Shown here in pieces: positions 8,836 to 46,636 of a stretch of 64,000 bases of DNA. The notes beneath the pieces were generated by a model. It worked only from the letters and a program-made list of their open reading frames with translations, had not been told where the DNA came from and searched no databases. The translations under genes and the position numbers were made by a program. This DNA comes from Auanema rhodensis (Eukaryota > Animalia > Nematoda). Within the stretch, counting starts at the first letter, position 1, and every line of letters begins with the position of its first letter. The stretch lies in the NCBI GenBank assembly GCA_964057225.1, contig OZ059898.1:8742001-8806000 (forward strand). Reading direction: 5' to 3'.

Positions 8836-10636
8836 TTAACGATATAACCCATCGACAATGCTGCCGGATGCTGATGTTGTAACTGTTGGTGCCGAAAAGG
8901 CAGAGTACAAATCAAACGATTCCTGTAAGTAAAATTATTAAAATAATATATTGTTTGAGAAAAAAAACAAATAAGCACATAATTGGATTAAGATTGTATG
9001 AAAATTCTTAATTCAAATACAAAACATAACCGTTCAATTTGTTTGTTAAATACTTTAAACGATTGTATCCAATTTGTGTTTCTTATTTTTATAATTTTGC
9101 TTACCTTCTTTCCTTTTCTCATTCGACATCCTAAGTATATTGAGATTGTAATCGAAATCAAGCAAGCTACAGTTAATACACCAATGATAATAAACATGTG
9201 AACTGGAGTTACAGCATTAGCAACTAAGCATTGTTCAACTGATCTAGACGAAACTGAAAATAACTATTTTATTTTATTATTATTATTATATTAAACATAC
9301 GTTCTCTTGATTCTTCTCCATCTAAAATTGTCAATGTTCTTGAAATTGAAACTTCATCGTAAAGATCTTCCTTATTTTGAGCTCCGGCTGTTAAAGGAGC
9401 ACCACGTCGGTGACGGAAACGAAGACGCTCAGCAGTTAAGTTTGAGTTTTGAATACGTTTGAAGCAGTTCTTTAATTGAAAGATGTTAACATCTAATTTC
9501 AAACAGCAAGTATGTTACCTGACTGCATTCTTTAGCATCTAAACATACTTGCACAGTACAATGAGCAAATACAGTACTTTGGTTTCCAAAACGGAATGTT
9601 TTGAATTTTGAGAAATATACTTCTTGATTGACATTTGCAAGTGGATCGATGATTTCTGACATTTCATCAACGGGACAGCTAAAAATAGAAAATTTAAAAA
9701 AATATATTTATATGAAACTAATTATACCTGCTCTGAACGAATGTTAAATGCTTAGCTTCAGGAGAGAGTACATCTTCACGGTCACTGAACATACATTCTT
9801 TGGGAGCTATTCCATGATAGGCTTCTAAAGATTTTGCAGCTTTATAATTATATAAGCTTTTTCCGACTTACGATCTGGTGAAAGAGCTATGTAAAACTCT
9901 ACTGTATCTCCGAATTTAGCAGCTCTAAGAGGTCTACCATCTGTACTTCTGAAGACCATTTCAACACGTGGTTTAGGCTTTCCTCCTGTAGAAGCAACAA
10001 CTTCATGGCCGCTATAAATTTTTTCAATTGAAATACATATTACTACTTAGATGACTTACTTAGATACATCATTGAAACGAATTGTTTGAACACTTCGAGT
10101 ATAAAGGCAGAAAACATGGTTAATACGAATTGTTTTACGAAGAGAAGTATCAACATTATCTTCAAGGGCTATGGTTGTTTCAGCACTACGATAATTAGGT
10201 TCCTGAAAAAAATACCAAATGTTGCAAATTCATTACTTTTTTTTAATCTTACCAAATCTGCCAGTAGTACGTCACAAGCCTTTCCATATGGGATTGTTAA
10301 ATTGAAATTTAATTGGCCTTGCTCGTTTCTTAACGAAGTCCCACATGGAACACGAGTTTTATGATCATAAACATAAACCTTGAAACAATTTATTAGATAT
10401 AAGTCTGTTTATAACGGAAACTCACCACAGGTTGAGCTTTTGGGTCAGCAACCCATCTAGCTACATCGGGATCTGAACGATTCAGCATAACAGTTAAGCT
10501 ATCAGCCGAGCATGATACTTCTTCAACTATAAAAAGAAATATTTGTTTAATTGATATCGTATTTCAACAGCTTACCAAATCCGTCACCAATTACCGCACG
10601 TAAAAGGCCAATGAAAAATATGAAGCTGGACAACAT
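8836..10636 (-). CDS. dyf-7: DYF-7 ZP-domain dendrite-anchoring protein (signal peptide, ZP domain, furin site RFRHRR, TM helix)
   Basis: Spliced translation contains QPVVYVYDHKTRVPCGTS, NHVFCLYTR, GHEVVASTGGKPKP, DPLANVNQEVYFSKFKTFRFGNQSTVF, NSNLTAERLRFRHRR and ends VDGLYR*, matching recalled C. elegans DYF-7. Multi-exon. Confidence 0.92.
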
Positions 10637-10816
10637 TGAAAAGCTTATAATAGTTAAAATAAGTTTTCTGAAAGAAAAAACGATTTGAGAGAGTTAATAT
10701 CTCGAATTTTGTTTTATAAAAGAAATAAAGGTGGAAATAAATAATGAATATATCATAAACAGGGAAATGAGAAGCGGTATTAGCGGTAAGACTAGCATCA
10801 GAAGAGATATTAAGGA

Positions 10817-13302
10817 CAGGTGGGGCGATGTTTAGGGTCGTCTTTATTACAGACAACATGAATATTCTAGTTGCTCAAAAGGTTTCACCGACGTATTTAT
10901 GAATATATATATATATATATCTGAAAGTGAATATATTATAGTATCATAATGAGAAATGAATAATGGGAGGTCTATATTTCAGGGAAAACATGAATATATT
11001 AGTTATGATGACCCAAAAATAATTAATAGAAGTAAAATAGTATGATTGTCTGTCATTTAGAAATGAAGATACTAATATAGCTTGAAAGTGGAGGATGTTT
11101 AATATCTTGAATATATAAAAAGATCAAAACATTGACCAAACTCCGGAAGAGTCAGGTGCTGCTGTTACGAGCAACAGCCATGACGACTGTGCACCGGAGG
11201 TGACCGGTAGCCAGATAGGTTTGGTACATAGGGCTGAATTCAAGAATGACCGGAAATGGTTAAAGGACGCAGCTGTTGGCTGTATGTCTGTCATTCTCTT
11301 TCTCTCTTACAGCTTCTTTCTCATTTTCTCTATTTCTCTCTCTTAGTTTTATCTACTATCTAGCCAGCTGTTGAGATAAAGGTAAAGACAATAACAGGTG
11401 GACCTGAAAAGACCATTTAGGCAAAGCTGGTTGTCCAGAATAAGAAAGACAATGAACATTCAATAACATTAGCTTCTTAAACAGATATCCAATCATATTG
11501 AGAGGTAATGACTGTAATTTTCTGGTCTTCAAATCATGTTAAAGCTTATTACTACATCAATAAAATGCATAAGGTCAATAGAGCAATATTGACTGTAATG
11601 GAATAATTTCAGTGAAGAAAACTAAAGCAAAGCTTCTACATCAGAGATTACTGTTAACACATAAAGCAGTTGTATGGCTTCTCTTCTTGATATCTGTATA
11701 AACAGGTGTTTCAAAAAGAAACACCTTAACAGAGGAGCACAGCTTCTTTCACAGAAAGTTATCAGTATGAAATCGAATGATTAAGTCAAAACTCTATAGG
11801 AATCATAGAAATACAATAGCCTTTTGCAAGCAGTAATTCCTAGCTACCTGAACTCGGTAAGGACAAGATAGGAAATAGCTGGTTATGATCGAGGCGTGGT
11901 CTCTATAGCTCAAGTCCCCAGGGCGGGGCAGGTGCAGATTACTGTAGATTTTACAGGAGAATTATCTATTTTGTTATTAACATAAAAATAAAGTATCTAT
12001 ATATTAAACCTGACTATATGAGTACAATATCGTTCAAAGTATCAGGAATAGGATTAATATTATACATTGAGTTGATTGAAGGTCAAGAATAGTTTCCATT
12101 CTCTTAATATTCAAGTGAGCTAATGCGGGAAAAGATAGTGGTCACGTACACCTACGTATCTATATGAAATTTTTTCATTGATTCATTATAATATTATTGA
12201 GAAATAATAAAATAGAAATACAATATTACTTATAATCTTATTGCTTACATTGCTTGTTTTTCATTTATATTATGTATGTATATATAACTGTGTTCGTGTA
12301 CGATATACATATGTATTTATCAATAGTTTCTAGAGCTCCAAATTTTAGAGCAGAACCAAATTTGTTGTTCTAACCTTTTACCAATAGATCGGATACCAAA
12401 ATATTCTTTTGAGCCTTATATGCTTGTACCAATTTTTTTAGAAACCGCCTTTAGACTTGATTTGTATACCTCCGATATGTATCCATTTTCAATGAGAAAA
12501 ATATTTGGAAATTAAATTAAAAATTCTTTAAATAGTTTAAATAATATTTTATAAATGTTGTATACATAGTCTCAAATTATCAAAACAATTCCTTGATACA
12601 CGATAATTCAGATAAAGTAATATCTTCAGGACTTCTTGGTAGCGCTCACATAAGTCATTGGAGAAAGAAGAATAATGAACGTAATTGAAGTTGCTTATTT
12701 TCCAGAGTCCTAGCTTAATCTAGGTAGCTTATATCCTTGATTGCCCTTTTATGATCCTTTCCATCGGTGTCAGTTCTTTGATCTTCTGATTACATGAAAC
12801 TGCTGCTTTTGATTATAAACAGGTGGCAGCAATTAATGGATTTCACCCCACCTTGGATCTCAATATCTCAATACATGTAATATATGTGATTTAATTGCAA
12901 ATTATGTATTTTTATACATTTTTCTAAATAGTGATTACTTTTTTCTTGTCCTTCAGATTTACAGAGCTCAAATCGTAGCTTAACGCTATAATTAGTCGTA
13001 TCAAGCTTGTGAATAAGGTTGTAATAATTATCCTATAGTTCATTACCAAAAGGATGATTGATCAAAGGTAAATTTTTTACACAATATTTTATAAAATAAT
13101 TCAGTAAAACTTATTTTTCAATTTAAGCCACTATTAATTTCAATAAATTCAAATATATTTTAAATGTCAAATAAATTAACTAATTGTATGATATTACTAT
13201 AAATATTGAACCATTCAATAAGCACACACATGTCCATATAGAGGAACAGCTATTACAGGTATCTGCAGGCTCGTTCAGGAACCGGCTCCATCGAGACAGG
13301 TG
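10817..13302. promoter_or_regulatory. E-box cluster (7x CAGGTG on + strand, plus CAGCTG) upstream of dyf-7
   Basis: CAGGTG at 10817, 11153, 11395, 11703, 11929, 12820, 13297; CAGCTG at 11270, 11365. Confidence 0.6.
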
Positions 13303-38048: not shown

Positions 38049-38350
38049 ATGCCAAAGGAGCCACGGCTTTTGAAGTTTGCAGCTCCTTTAGCTCAGTGTA
38101 CACCAGAGGTTAGATTATTGTTCGCATGTACTCTTAGCATATAGTGTTTTCTGTTAATCTTTGAGATGTGTTCTCTCCTTCTAGGCTATTTCTTACGGAA
38201 ATTGTGTCTCAAATCAAGCTGAAAGAATTACAAAAAACGCTTGTGCCAAAGAATTCGAAAAGCTTATCACTTGCTTCCGTCAACAGGTTTGCGTTCTTAT
38301 AACTCTCGAACTCTTTCAAAAAAAATTTTTAGCAAAAAAAGACGAAGTAA
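38049..38350 (+). CDS. NDUFAF8: Twin CX9C complex I assembly factor NDUFAF8-like, 59 aa
   Basis: Three exons: MPKEPRLLKFAAPLAQCTPE|AISYGNCVSNQAERITKNACAKEFEKLITCFRQQ|QKKTK*. Two exact CX9C motifs; YGxC and CAKEF match recalled NDUFAF8. Confidence 0.85.
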
Positions 38351-38353
38351 ATC

Positions 38354-39292
38354 ATGAAAACCAAGCGATATAAGCGTGCTCAGAAAATCTTAACTTTTTT
38401 CAAATACCATTATAAAATAACTGCTCCGTTCAAGTTGGTATCTCGCATGTTTCCACGAGTATCATTTGTTTCAGAGTCTTAGTAGATGGTACTTTTTGTA
38501 TGGCCGCCTTGGCCAATAAGCTTAATCTGAAGGAGCAGTTACCAAAATATTTAAGTGGAGAAACCGAAATTTGTACAACTAGATGTGTAATGAAAGAATT
38601 AGGTTAGATAAATTGTTTTAAGTTTTTTTTATTATTTCCAAATACAGAGGATATTGGTCCTGATGTATACGGCGCATTAGCTATTTGTCGTAATTTCGAG
38701 GTAATTCATTGTCCTCATACACCAAGTAAAGGAGCCAGCGATTGTTTCCTGCGCTTCGCTAAGAAAATGAGGGCTAACAATTCTAAATTTGTTATAGCTA
38801 CTCAAGTTAGTTTTTACTTTATTTTTGATATTCATTTTGAATTTTAGGATGATGTTTTAACTGAGAAACTAAGACTTATACCAGGTGTACCAGTTCTTTA
38901 CATCAAATACCGCACAATATTAATAGACAAGCCTTCCGATGTGAGATTTTAAAAGAACCTCCTTCCATTTTAAAGTTAGTTTTAGATTTCTCTCAATGAT
39001 GCTCAGAATCTCAATTCGGAGTTCGAGAAGATTAATACTCTTAAGAAAAGCATTTTGGGCGATGATGACAAGGTAATCAGAAAAAAGAAAAAGATAAAAG
39101 TGAGCTCATAAAATACGAATCTTTTAAAACTATATTTATATCTAGGGTGCCAATCCTCTCTCTTGTAAAAAAAAAAAAGTTAAAGTTGCCGAGCAAAAAA
39201 CTTCGGAATCTTCAACTAAAACAGTGAATGGAAAACGAAAAAGAAAGAAGAAAATTTCGAGTGGGATTTCTACAACTTCAGTGTCTACCTAA
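38354..39292 (+). CDS. UTP23: rRNA-processing PIN-domain protein UTP23
   Basis: MKTKRYKRAQKILTFF, VLVDGTF, TTRCVMKEL, CPH..SDC, FVIATQD, IPGVP, GANPLSCKKKK; lysine-rich tail. Confidence 0.92.
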
Positions 39293-39423
39293 TTCTATGC
39301 TCAAGCAATTTCACTGTATAAGGAAAATTCACTATTGTTATTTGTTGTTGGATCATGAATTTTCCTTCTTTTTTTTTGTATTCTTGTTCTGCACGGTTCA
39401 ACCCGATATACGTATCTATCTAC

Positions 39424-39448
39424 ATATATATATATATATATATATATA
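39424..39448. repeat. (AT)n microsatellite between UTP23 and the ITFG2-like gene
   Basis: ~12 perfect AT units. Confidence 0.9.
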
Positions 39449-39485
39449 GCAAAATGATTGAAACCTTTCCAATAGAATTCCTTAA

Positions 39486-41183
39486 ATGGGACCTGAATTA
39501 GATGAATGCGTATCAATATGTCCCATGACTATATATGCTAGTGATATTCTAAATAATGGGCCTACGGCGTTGTGCAGAGATTTAGCAAGCACTTCTAATA
39601 GAATTGGTAAAAATGATGATTCTTATGAATTAGTTAGAAGTCAAGTTACATCTCTGCTTATCTTCTATGCTCAGGATAGCAAAAATACATTTTTAGTTCT
39701 TGGCACCACTAAAGGGGAGGTTGTTCAGAAAATATAGCATATGTGAAGTTACAGTATTCTTCAGGTTCTATTTATTCCTATTGATGATTCGAAGGAAAAT
39801 TCCGATATATCCAAACACGAAGTTAATTCGTCATCTCCTGTTACTGCATTGGCGTATGGCAAAATATCTTCTCAGGAAGGGTATGTAGTTTAGTTTTTTA
39901 GATTTGAATAGTCACTGTTAGTTCAGATCTGAAGTTGTTGCCATATGCGCAGATGGAACAGCTGTTGCTTTAAGTCCTCCTAATTTAGTAGGAACTTGGG
40001 TTCCTGATCCTGTATTTGAGCAACGTCTACAAGTTAGAATTAACATTTTTTGAAAATCACTAGAAATATTTAGGCAAATATTACTTCTGCATATATCACC
40101 GATATTGACAAAGATAATCACCAAGAACTAGTTGCTATTCTTACGGATCGTGTGGGTTTGTTAGTATCAGAAGAATGAGATGAAATCATTACTACAGTAC
40201 GAACTTTCCGTTGGAGTCAAGCAGATAAAAGGCTCTTACCAATAAATAAATGGGAAGTTCCTTGCCAAATAACAGCTTTTGGAATTGGTGAAGCAGGGTG
40301 ATTTATTCGAACTGAATTTTATAAATATATCATGTTTTTAGAATTAACAGGAAAATGGAAGTTTGGCTTTCTCAGTTGGACAACACGTATTATGCTTGTT
40401 TGCCTTTATCAGGTTTGAGGGTTCTAGAAAGTTATGAATTGTTTTTGGTTTTTAGGAAAGTCGGATGTGAATATATGTAGACATACGAATATGCGAGATC
40501 GTGCCTTAATGGCAATACCAGTGAAAGCCGATTTCACAAATGTCCTTGGTGCTCTCATTAATCACGTTGTCATCATCTGTAAGTTCAACCGAACGGTTAT
40601 AACCCAAATTATGTTGAGAATGTTTAGATATTTCTATATAATAACAACGCTTATTCTATATTTTTATAATGCGAGTTCAGCAATATTTTAATTCAATGTT
40701 GAATTGTTGCATTAGTTCTAAAGAAACAAAATAATGCTTGTTGCTTTATCTATTAAGTAAACGACGTTTACAATTTTAGCAAATAATCAGGAGAAAGTCC
40801 TTCGACATTTTGGGTGGCCAGTAATTGCTACATCCATTGTACATTTTTCTAATTTCACCATCATTGTAACTCTTCATCTTCGAGGACAAGTTCTTCTGTA
40901 CGCTTTTAATCACAGAACTGGACCCAAAGTTTGTGACTATGAAAATATTATTTTATTAATTCTTATAATTCAGGAATCGGAAGTCTATCCTTATGAAAAG
41001 TTCACTTCACTACCGGCTAGTGAGAGGCTATTTGCTATTGCTAAAAATTATAGTGTATTAATTGGTGTTTCTGATTGTGAAGGGCGCTATGTTGTCTATG
41101 ATATCAATGTTTCAGACTTTTATAGAAAATTCGCTTTCACTGATTCTCTCAAATCTGGATTGATAAACTCAATATTAACTTGA
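39486..41183 (+). CDS. ITFG2-like FG-GAP beta-propeller protein (KICSTOR subunit homologue)
   Basis: Spliced segment PVFEQRLQANITSAYITDIDKDNHQELVAILTDRVVRTFRW..INKW..EVWLSQ aligns by eye with recalled human ITFG2 ([45 protein letters not shown]). 5' exon structure and the 40580-40780 segment are uncertain. Confidence 0.72.
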
Positions 41184-41740: not shown

Positions 41741-43764
41741 ATGGCGGATCAGACGGAGCAACAGGTAGTCAGTACTGCCGAGAAAGTTTTGGAGTTTCTT
41801 AATGATAGATCAAAGGTAAAAGCATTTATGTTACAAATTTATTTTGATGATGTTTTGTATAGAATTCCGGAATTGAAGATCTAACCAGTGTTGAATTTGC
41901 TGCATATCTCACTGAGACCGATCCTTTGAAACATCTCAGAGAACAGTTTCATTATCCCAAATGCAAAACTCTACCTGATGGTTTGTATTGTGTTTTTTAA
42001 ATACTCATTTTACTATTTAGTCGATGCGTCTGTATGTGATCTTGAGTCGGAGTCCATTTATTTATGTGGACATTCTCTGGGACTTTTACCAAAACCTACT
42101 GAACGTATTATGCAAGAGCAAATGAAAAAATGGGCAGAACTGTAAAGACATATCTTTCATAAAAGTTTTATTCGTTTTATTTAGTGGAGTATTCGGACAT
42201 TTGAATGGCGATCTACCTTGGGCTTACTGTGATGAAAAAGGTGTACCGGGTATAGCTCAATTGGTTGGAGCTAAGCCGGAAGAAGTTGCTTTGTGTAATG
42301 GACTTACCGTTAATATTCATGTGCTATTAGTCAGTTCATGCAAAACTATCTTTATGATTAAAATTTTTTTAGTCTGCTTTTTACAAGCCCACAGATACTA
42401 GACACAAAATTTTGATTGAGTCAAAAGCTTTTCCTTCTGATCATTACGCGGTTGAATCACAGATTCGTTTAAAAGGAAGAACTGTGGAAGAAAGCTTGGT
42501 AATTTACTCTTTACATCTTAATTTTAATATTACAGCCTATATTCTGTACTGTGTATCAATATTATTTTTAAGGTTTGTTTGAGTCCTCGTGAAGGTGAAG
42601 ACACTCTTCGCCAAGAAGACATTCTGGAGTATATTGAAAAGAATGGAGATCAGGTCTTGGACTTGTACAGAAGAGCTGTATTCAATAAAGAAATTATTTA
42701 GATCGCAGTAATTTGGTTTGCTGGAGTTCAGTATTACACAGGACAATTGTTTGACATGAAATCCATTACTGAGGCTGGACACCGTAAAGTAAGATGTTTT
42801 TCTGTTGATTCATGAATTGTTCATTAAATTGTGTAATATGCTTTAATCAAACTTTTATTTGAAGGGATGTTTAGTTGGTTTTGACCTGGCTCATGGTTTT
42901 ATTAATGTTCCTCTTCAACTTCATTATTGGGATGTTGATTTCGCAGCTTGGTGCTCTTACAAATACGGATGTACAGGTGCTGGGGGGTTAGCTGGACTCT
43001 TTGTTCACGAACGGTACGTTTAAACTTCAAAAATGAAAATGAAGTTAATATATTCAGGTTCAAGCATGATCAAAGAGATCGTATGCTTGGATGGTGGAGT
43101 CACAAAATGTCGACTAGATTTACTATGGATAATGGTTCGTAATAGTCATACTATGCTAATATAATATTTATTCTTAGTTCTTGACTTAGAAGAAGGTGCA
43201 TCAGGTTTCAGAATAAGTAATCCTCCAATTCATTTGGCTGTTCCTATTATGGGAATTTTAGAGGTATCCTATTTATATTTCATACTAAATATAATATATC
43301 GCATTGAGGTCCTAAGCACTGTACGCCTGGATGATCTCCGTAGTAGATCGTGCTACTTAACAGGATACTTGGAATTTTTGATAAAACATTTCTTTGCACC
43401 TGACTCTCCTCATCGGTTATTAATACTGTATAATTGATTTTTCATTTATATTTTGTGTTATAGAACTGGAGACATTTCCTGTGAAATAATAACTCCAGCA
43501 GAATTTCATCAGCGGGGATGTCAGCTTTCTTTAAAATTCAATGTTCCCATTGATGCCATTTATAGTGAACTGGTAAAGAGAGGATGTGCTGTAAGTTATA
43601 AGCATTGGATCTCAGATTAACTTTAAAACTTTCAGCTCGACAAACGGTATCCTTATGTAATCCGAATTTCTGCTGTTCACTTGTATAATAATTATAACGA
43701 TTGTCGTCGATTCGTAAGTGCACTTCTGGAAGCTGCTTCAATCGTCCAAGAAAATAAAGCTTGA
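41741..43764 (+). CDS. kynu-1: Kynureninase (PLP-dependent)
   Basis: [61 protein letters not shown] (PLP lysine), RISNPP, RGCQLSL. Confidence 0.95.

Positions 43765-44212: not shown

Positions 44213-46636
<2,424 letters not shown>

Follow-up and report, generated by a model that had tools for sequence, protein, structure and literature searches.

Does a nematode gene with many introns encode ITFG2, and would its presence mean that nematodes hold more of the KICSTOR complex than the SZT2 subunit? The question is raised by a gene at positions 39486-41183 of a 64,000-nucleotide stretch of the Auanema rhodensis genome (GenBank assembly GCA_964057225.1, contig OZ059898.1, positions 8,742,001 to 8,806,000), referred to here as the window. 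In humans, the ITFG2 propeller and KPTN form a heterodimer that docks on SZT2 within KICSTOR, which is also where the established role of ITFG2 lies. Through SZT2, KICSTOR holds GATOR1 and keeps the Rag GTPases and mTORC1 off when nutrients are scarce.

Reviews call KICSTOR mammal- or vertebrate-specific and describe C. elegans as having only its SZT2 subunit (PMC8534245), in agreement with the preliminary description of this locus; the same point has been made for Drosophila (PMC13370336). A 2025 study reports KICSTOR subunits in non-Dikarya fungi (PMC11836306). Our literature search found nothing on nematode ITFG2, and no report linking KICSTOR subunits other than SZT2 to nematodes.

We find that the gene in the window is real, evolves under purifying selection, belongs to the ITFG2 family and is common to many clade-V nematodes. 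Taken as a whole, the explanation that we hold to be very probable is that it is the orthologue of ITFG2, likely a propeller, which would bind KPTN in a KICSTOR-like complex, would be expressed from an operon and would have been lost from Caenorhabditis.

A nine-exon gene under purifying selection

The gene lies on the + strand, with its ATG at 39486 and its stop codon at 41181-41183, as determined by eye and by script. It has nine exons with consistent splice phases, and a script count over the concatenated exons gives 396 codons and one terminal stop. All eight introns are of the GT-AG type and measure, in order, 45, 46, 41, 42, 44, 43, 201 and 45 nt, so that seven of the eight fall between 41 and 46 nt and one reaches 201 nt. 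G+C content is 34-42% in the exons against 18-31% in the introns. Within the 64-kb window tblastn found no second copy, and the gene is single-copy there.

A stop-free read-through of exon 8, intron 8 and exon 9 (40782-41180) was used as the query for a large protein search. This query retrieved a 371-residue protein of Auanema sp. JU1783 (E=3.7e-39), which NCBI catalogues as 'unnamed protein product' (GCA_943334845.2, contig CALQYR020007327.1), and otherwise reached one strongylid fragment and one low-complexity chance match. The nine exon translations are collinear and non-overlapping on the JU1783 protein, with 304 of 391 residues identical (78%), and all predicted splice junctions coincide with those of the independent JU1783 gene model. 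The many-intron gene of the preliminary description is thereby upheld with its exact coordinates.

Exon 1 (39486-39719, on the + strand like all that follow) holds 78 codons beginning with the start ATG; 55 of its 78 residues are identical to the JU1783 protein (residues 1-80), and its N-terminal 'M..(C)VSICP' is common to strongylid orthologues. Exon 2 (39765-39880) is identical at 31 of 38 residues (JU1783 residues 81-118), and its DNA is 78% identical to the JU1783 locus compared with 38-43% for the introns on either side. Exon 3 (39927-40032) matches at 31 of 34 residues (JU1783 residues 121-154; DNA 75% identical), and exon 4 (40074-40155), which carries an FG-GAP-like DIDKDNHQELV motif together with TDRV, at 24 of 27. 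The most conserved block of the family is exon 5 (40198-40297), which reads VRTFRW...LLPINKWEVPCQI. Here, 30 of 31 residues are identical to the JU1783 protein and 22 of 31 to the Haemonchus orthologue, with columns that are invariant in an alignment of 12 nematodes and that align to human ITFG2. Identity to the JU1783 protein is 22/23 in exon 6 (40342-40412; DNA 82% identical), 31/40 in exon 7 (40456-40578) and 41/49 in exon 8 (40780-40928), the last of which formed part of the query described above. Exon 9 (40974-41183) includes the stop codon, has the same frame and stop position in the JU1783 genome, and ends in 'YVVYDINV', which matches the strongylid C-termini 'VVVYEVP'.

At the DNA level, the exons of the window and of the JU1783 locus align without gaps at 67-82% identity, compared with 33-47% for introns and flanks. 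Across the exons pN is 0.10 and pS 0.82 (saturated), and the gene is therefore under strong purifying selection.

The JU1783 orthologue shares the nine-exon structure and the neighbours Peroxin-3, UTP23, ITFG2 and kynureninase, and differs in that its deposited model is 27 residues shorter at the C-terminus. The deposited protein ends '...YVVIT', and the genome (JU1783 locus 10001-11640) continues in frame through 27 conserved codons. Because the JU1783 genome is open to the same stop as the window, the C-terminus in the window is correct and it is the deposited model that falls short; judging from the sequence, either the last splice or the termination of the public JU1783 model is probably wrong.

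Two further features of the gene were observed. Within exon 1, positions 39522-39630 encode about 35 extra residues that are found in Auanema-type proteins and absent from strongylid orthologues; in the fold model this stretch has a pLDDT under 50, and between the two Auanema-type genomes no other part is less conserved. Intron 8 (40929-40973; 45 nt) is in frame and stop-free, and its retention would add 15 residues and leave the protein unbroken.

Membership in the ITFG2 family

The preliminary description had recognised the ITFG2 core motif in the spliced protein, and the motif is present across exons 4 and 5. More specifically, D-I-D-K-D-N-H-Q-E-L-V-A-I-L-T-D-R-V / V-R-T-F-R-W spans the exon 4/5 junction (40101-40214): the end of exon 4 reads DIDKDNHQELVAILTDRV, and VRTFRW opens exon 5. 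Its presence goes well beyond a chance likeness. The signature DxDxDxxxELV...TDRVVRxFRW is invariant across 12 nematodes and aligns to residues 133-157 of human ITFG2 as well as to protist ITFG2.

The window protein was scored exon by exon only, and its family membership is carried over from the 78%-identical JU1783 orthologue. Taken alone, exon 4 matches the Pfam family Itfg2 (PF15907) at E=0.002 and 17.9 bits over profile positions 73-99, and its best PDB matches are, weakly, human ITFG2 chains at residues 127-151. In the same exon-by-exon searches, the other exons gave no Pfam match and either no PDB match or chance ones. The PDB matches of exon 1 and exon 6 (fibrinogen, GalNAc-transferase) were rejected as chance.

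Searched against Pfam, the JU1783 orthologue reaches Itfg2 with 70 bits (E=2.7e-19), where the gathering cut-off is 27. The families that follow, BBS7 propeller and BBS2_Mid, reach 16.8 and 15.9 bits, short of cut-offs of 27 bits, in agreement with the proposal that the gene is an ITFG2 homologue rather than BBS2/7 or another propeller. Strongylid and Heterorhabditis orthologues score 63-64 bits on Pfam Itfg2. The match to human ITFG2 is reciprocal: human ITFG2 is the top PDB match of the JU1783 orthologue (E=3.7e-7), and a profile built from 12 nematode orthologues retrieves human ITFG2 alone among all PDB sequences at E<=1 (E=2.7e-14), with profile positions 31-170 aligned to human residues 31-189. 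Compared by hhalign with a canonical protist ITFG2, itself scoring 234 bits on Pfam Itfg2, the nematode profile aligns over a core of 68 columns only, with a probability of 97% and an identity of 40%.

Only in its N-terminal ~40-50% does the protein resemble canonical ITFG2 in sequence (human residues about 31-208). On the Pfam Itfg2 profile the match is accordingly partial, with nematode orthologues matching positions 11-159 (to 190) of 330, and the C-terminal half of the nematode proteins is not recognised as ITFG2 by Pfam, phmmer or hhalign. This half is conserved among nematode orthologues. From its sequence, we read it as diverged, and likeness to the full profile is not a curated criterion for membership.

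Among the closest known systems is human ITFG2 (PDB 25ge_B, 9v6e_B and 9o5a_G), with which the nematode protein shares the DxDxDxxxELV...TDRVVRxFRW...KW core and, most likely, the propeller architecture, and which is both its best and sole PDB sequence match and the top structural match of its fold model. The two differ in that identity is only ~20-24%, that the alignable part covers about human residues 31-208, and that the human protein has 447 residues compared with 396. More generally, nematode orthologues have 341-396 residues and fall short of the human protein by 50-100. The strongylid and Heterorhabditis orthologues, 31-39% identical to the Auanema-type protein, share its Pfam family, its invariant core residues and the UTP23 gene upstream, but have ~341 residues and lack the ~35-residue stretch of exon 1. 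The BBSome propellers BBS2, BBS7 and BBS9 have related FG-GAP-like folds and show a weak Pfam and structural likeness; in contrast to ITFG2, they fall under Pfam cut-offs, lack TDRVVRxFRW and are not matched by the nematode profile.

Predicted fold

An AlphaFold2 model of the JU1783 orthologue, computed from 15 aligned sequences, is all-beta with ~27 strands (pLDDT 61.7, pTM 0.55). Foldseek places ITFG2 chains of the human KICSTOR cryo-EM entries 9v6e, 9o5a, 9v80, 9van, 9v86 and 9v9n at ranks 1-6, with E-values of 9e-11 to 3e-8 yet a TM of only 0.38-0.40, the model being of moderate confidence. VIA-align likewise gives ITFG2 chains at ranks 1-5 (Z 14.8-15.9; for example, rmsd 3.2 A over 182 residues at 24% identity), and these lead BBSome and nucleoporin propellers by just 1-2 Z units. 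An ESM Atlas model of the same protein fits best on an arthropod cluster named 'KICSTOR complex protein ITFG2-like' (TM 0.74/0.76 over 312 residues). When the Atlas search was restricted to unnamed clusters it returned a vertebrate kaptin cluster only and no hidden nematode family. On these models, the fold is most likely a seven-bladed propeller of the FG-GAP type.

Genomic neighbourhood and a candidate operon

Immediately upstream of ITFG2 and on the same strand lies UTP23 (38351-39292), which contains an Fcf1 domain (Pfam Fcf1 at 38608-38844, E=7e-8). An Fcf1 gene also directly precedes Itfg2 in the JU1783 locus and in the strongylid contig SRR15275133_119523, and the order NDUFAF8-UTP23-ITFG2 is shared by the JU1783 locus and the window (38185-41183).

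The spacer from the UTP23 stop to the ITFG2 ATG measures 193 nt in the window (39293-39485, + strand), an operon-type layout, and contains a candidate trans-splice acceptor AG at 39474-39475. In JU1783 the spacer is 129 nt long; its acceptor directly adjoins the ATG and is preceded by an AATAAA at a distance of ~90 nt. In SRR15275133_119523 it is 204 nt long and also contains AATAAA. Unlike these two, the spacer in the window has no canonical AATAAA. All three spacers fall within the 100-400 nt expected between same-strand genes of a nematode operon.

SRR15275133_119523 is a Logan contig of 2215 nt that runs without introns through the end of NDUFAF8, UTP23 (158-883) and ITFG2 (1088-2125). A second intron-free Logan contig (SRR22936853) carries ITFG2 alone. 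The lack of introns points to an RNA origin of both contigs, and the ITFG2 orthologue would thus be transcribed in strongylids. The arrangement of these sequences suggests a conserved three-gene operon, NDUFAF8-UTP23-ITFG2, from which ITFG2 appears to be expressed as the downstream gene. If so, the operon would tie the expression of ITFG2 to growth genes, namely the ribosome-biogenesis factor UTP23 and the complex-I factor NDUFAF8.

The preliminary description had also pointed to two amino-acid-handling genes close by. Both are present: kynureninase lies downstream of ITFG2 (KYNU_C match at 43438-43617), and a class II lysyl-type tRNA synthetase (KARS) lies at 45536-46633. A syntenic kynureninase gene with Aminotran_5 and KYNU_C domains is found in the JU1783 locus. 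Their proximity is nevertheless plain conserved synteny, and nothing functional ties them to ITFG2; the tight conserved link is to UTP23 and NDUFAF8 upstream.

In the spacer between UTP23 and ITFG2, a (TA)n microsatellite was observed at about 39427-39450, roughly 35 nt upstream of the ITFG2 ATG.

Distribution among nematodes

Word-index searches with the JU1783 protein and with nematode profiles returned 17 clade-V nematode proteins, and two further ones came from Logan assemblies. The species comprise Haemonchus contortus, H. placei, Nippostrongylus, Ancylostoma ceylanicum, A. duodenale, Necator, Oesophagostomum, Cylicocyclus, Heligmosomoides, Angiostrongylus, Dictyocaulus, Cooperia, Heterorhabditis and Auanema. 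Nearly all of these proteins carry a precomputed PF15907 assignment, and for at least 13 clade-V nematodes the databases already flag or name the family. The preliminary description had given broad annotation of ITFG2 in nematodes as grounds against its proposal, and at the level of databases this is what we find. Given this annotation the gene is not new at the database level; nematode ITFG2 is a case of ordinary orthology that automated annotation has recorded.

No protein from Caenorhabditis or from clades I, III or IV was found in the word-index searches, which also missed vertebrate ITFG2. Since the same searches failed to reach the vertebrate protein, the blank for Caenorhabditis is weak evidence. 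Drawing mainly on the cited reviews, loss of ITFG2 in Caenorhabditis is likely; on a broader wording, the gene has probably been lost there or changed beyond recognition. ITFG2 itself is ancestral, in line with the KICSTOR subunits of fungi (PMC11836306), and Caenorhabditis would then have lost it secondarily.

Alternative readings and the role in KICSTOR

Three other readings of the gene were weighed against an ITFG2 orthologue acting in a KICSTOR-like complex. That the locus is decaying or mis-modelled, being a pseudogene or a series of ORF fragments strung together by chance, is hardly credible. Searched one by one, the exons apart from exon 4 brought up nothing, but the frame is intact, the splice sites are canonical, the introns are positioned as in the sister model, pN lies well under pS and the stop falls at the same position in the sister genome. 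The intron-free transcript contigs of the orthologue in strongylids also speak against decay. It is also highly improbable that the protein is another propeller, be it BBS2, BBS7, ITFG1 or a generic FG-GAP/WD40 protein, with no more in common with ITFG2 than the DxDxD...ELV motif. Such a reading could draw on the sub-threshold Pfam matches to the BBS7 propeller and BBS2_Mid, on the first feature-based Atlas match, which is a cluster named BBS7-propeller, and on the Z of 13-14.6 that other propellers reach in VIA-align. Yet Itfg2 scores far beyond its cut-off whereas all other families remain under theirs, ITFG2 is alone among PDB matches of the nematode profile, and the TDRVVRxFRW block is specific to ITFG2 in the alignments. 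On the Pfam and PDB profile scores, an identity as BBS2/7, ITFG1 or any other propeller was rejected.

The remaining alternative accepts the family and questions the role: the protein would be an ITFG2-derived propeller that has lost its place in KICSTOR and serves another role in clade V, its N-terminal blades retained, its C-terminal half diverged and shortened and its partners KPTN and KICS2 possibly missing. We consider this unlikely, yet it is the main rival. In every nematode orthologue Pfam Itfg2 positions 11-159 of 330 are the only ones to match, the hhalign and PDB profile matches end at about human residue 208, and Caenorhabditis apparently manages without ITFG2. Against it, purifying selection spans the full length of the protein and takes in the C-terminal exons, 312 residues of the Atlas model can be superposed on arthropod ITFG2-like proteins, and the established role of ITFG2 lies within KICSTOR.

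The favoured reading, and the simplest, is that of an ITFG2 orthologue with the family's known role. Accepting it, the nematode protein would be the same structural subunit as its human counterpart, a putative KPTN-binding propeller, and together with KPTN it would dock on nematode SZT2 in a KICSTOR-like complex. A fuller KICSTOR in nematodes, as the preliminary description had proposed, is plausible. The more specific hypothesis that Auanema, Heterorhabditis and Strongylida keep a working ITFG2-kaptin module with SZT2, in a KICSTOR-like complex that Caenorhabditis has lost, is tentative, and we lean slightly away from it.

Because ITFG2 orthologues occur in at least 13 clade-V nematodes, the statement that only SZT2 is present cannot be extended from C. 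elegans to nematodes as a whole, which is a modest correction. It also offers a natural comparison of the way in which GATOR1 is brought to the lysosome when the ITFG2/KPTN module is present and when it is absent. Should the working module prove true, KICSTOR could be studied genetically in an invertebrate, either the culturable free-living Auanema or the parasite Haemonchus.

Public gene models and names

In some public gene models, such as those of Cylicocyclus nassatus (567 aa) and of Cooperia oncophora (130 aa), UTP23 (Fcf1) and ITFG2 are joined in a single product. These fusions are most likely annotation artefacts of the tight operon spacing. It is the fused model that has led to the C. 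nassatus product being called 'rRNA-processing protein UTP23 homolog' in UniRef. In Heligmosomoides polygyrus, the orthologue (251 aa) is named 'CNH domain-containing protein' in UniRef. Against the nematode ITFG2 profile this protein scores E=8e-118, against Pfam Itfg2 a weak 21 bits; by its sequence, the name looks misleading.
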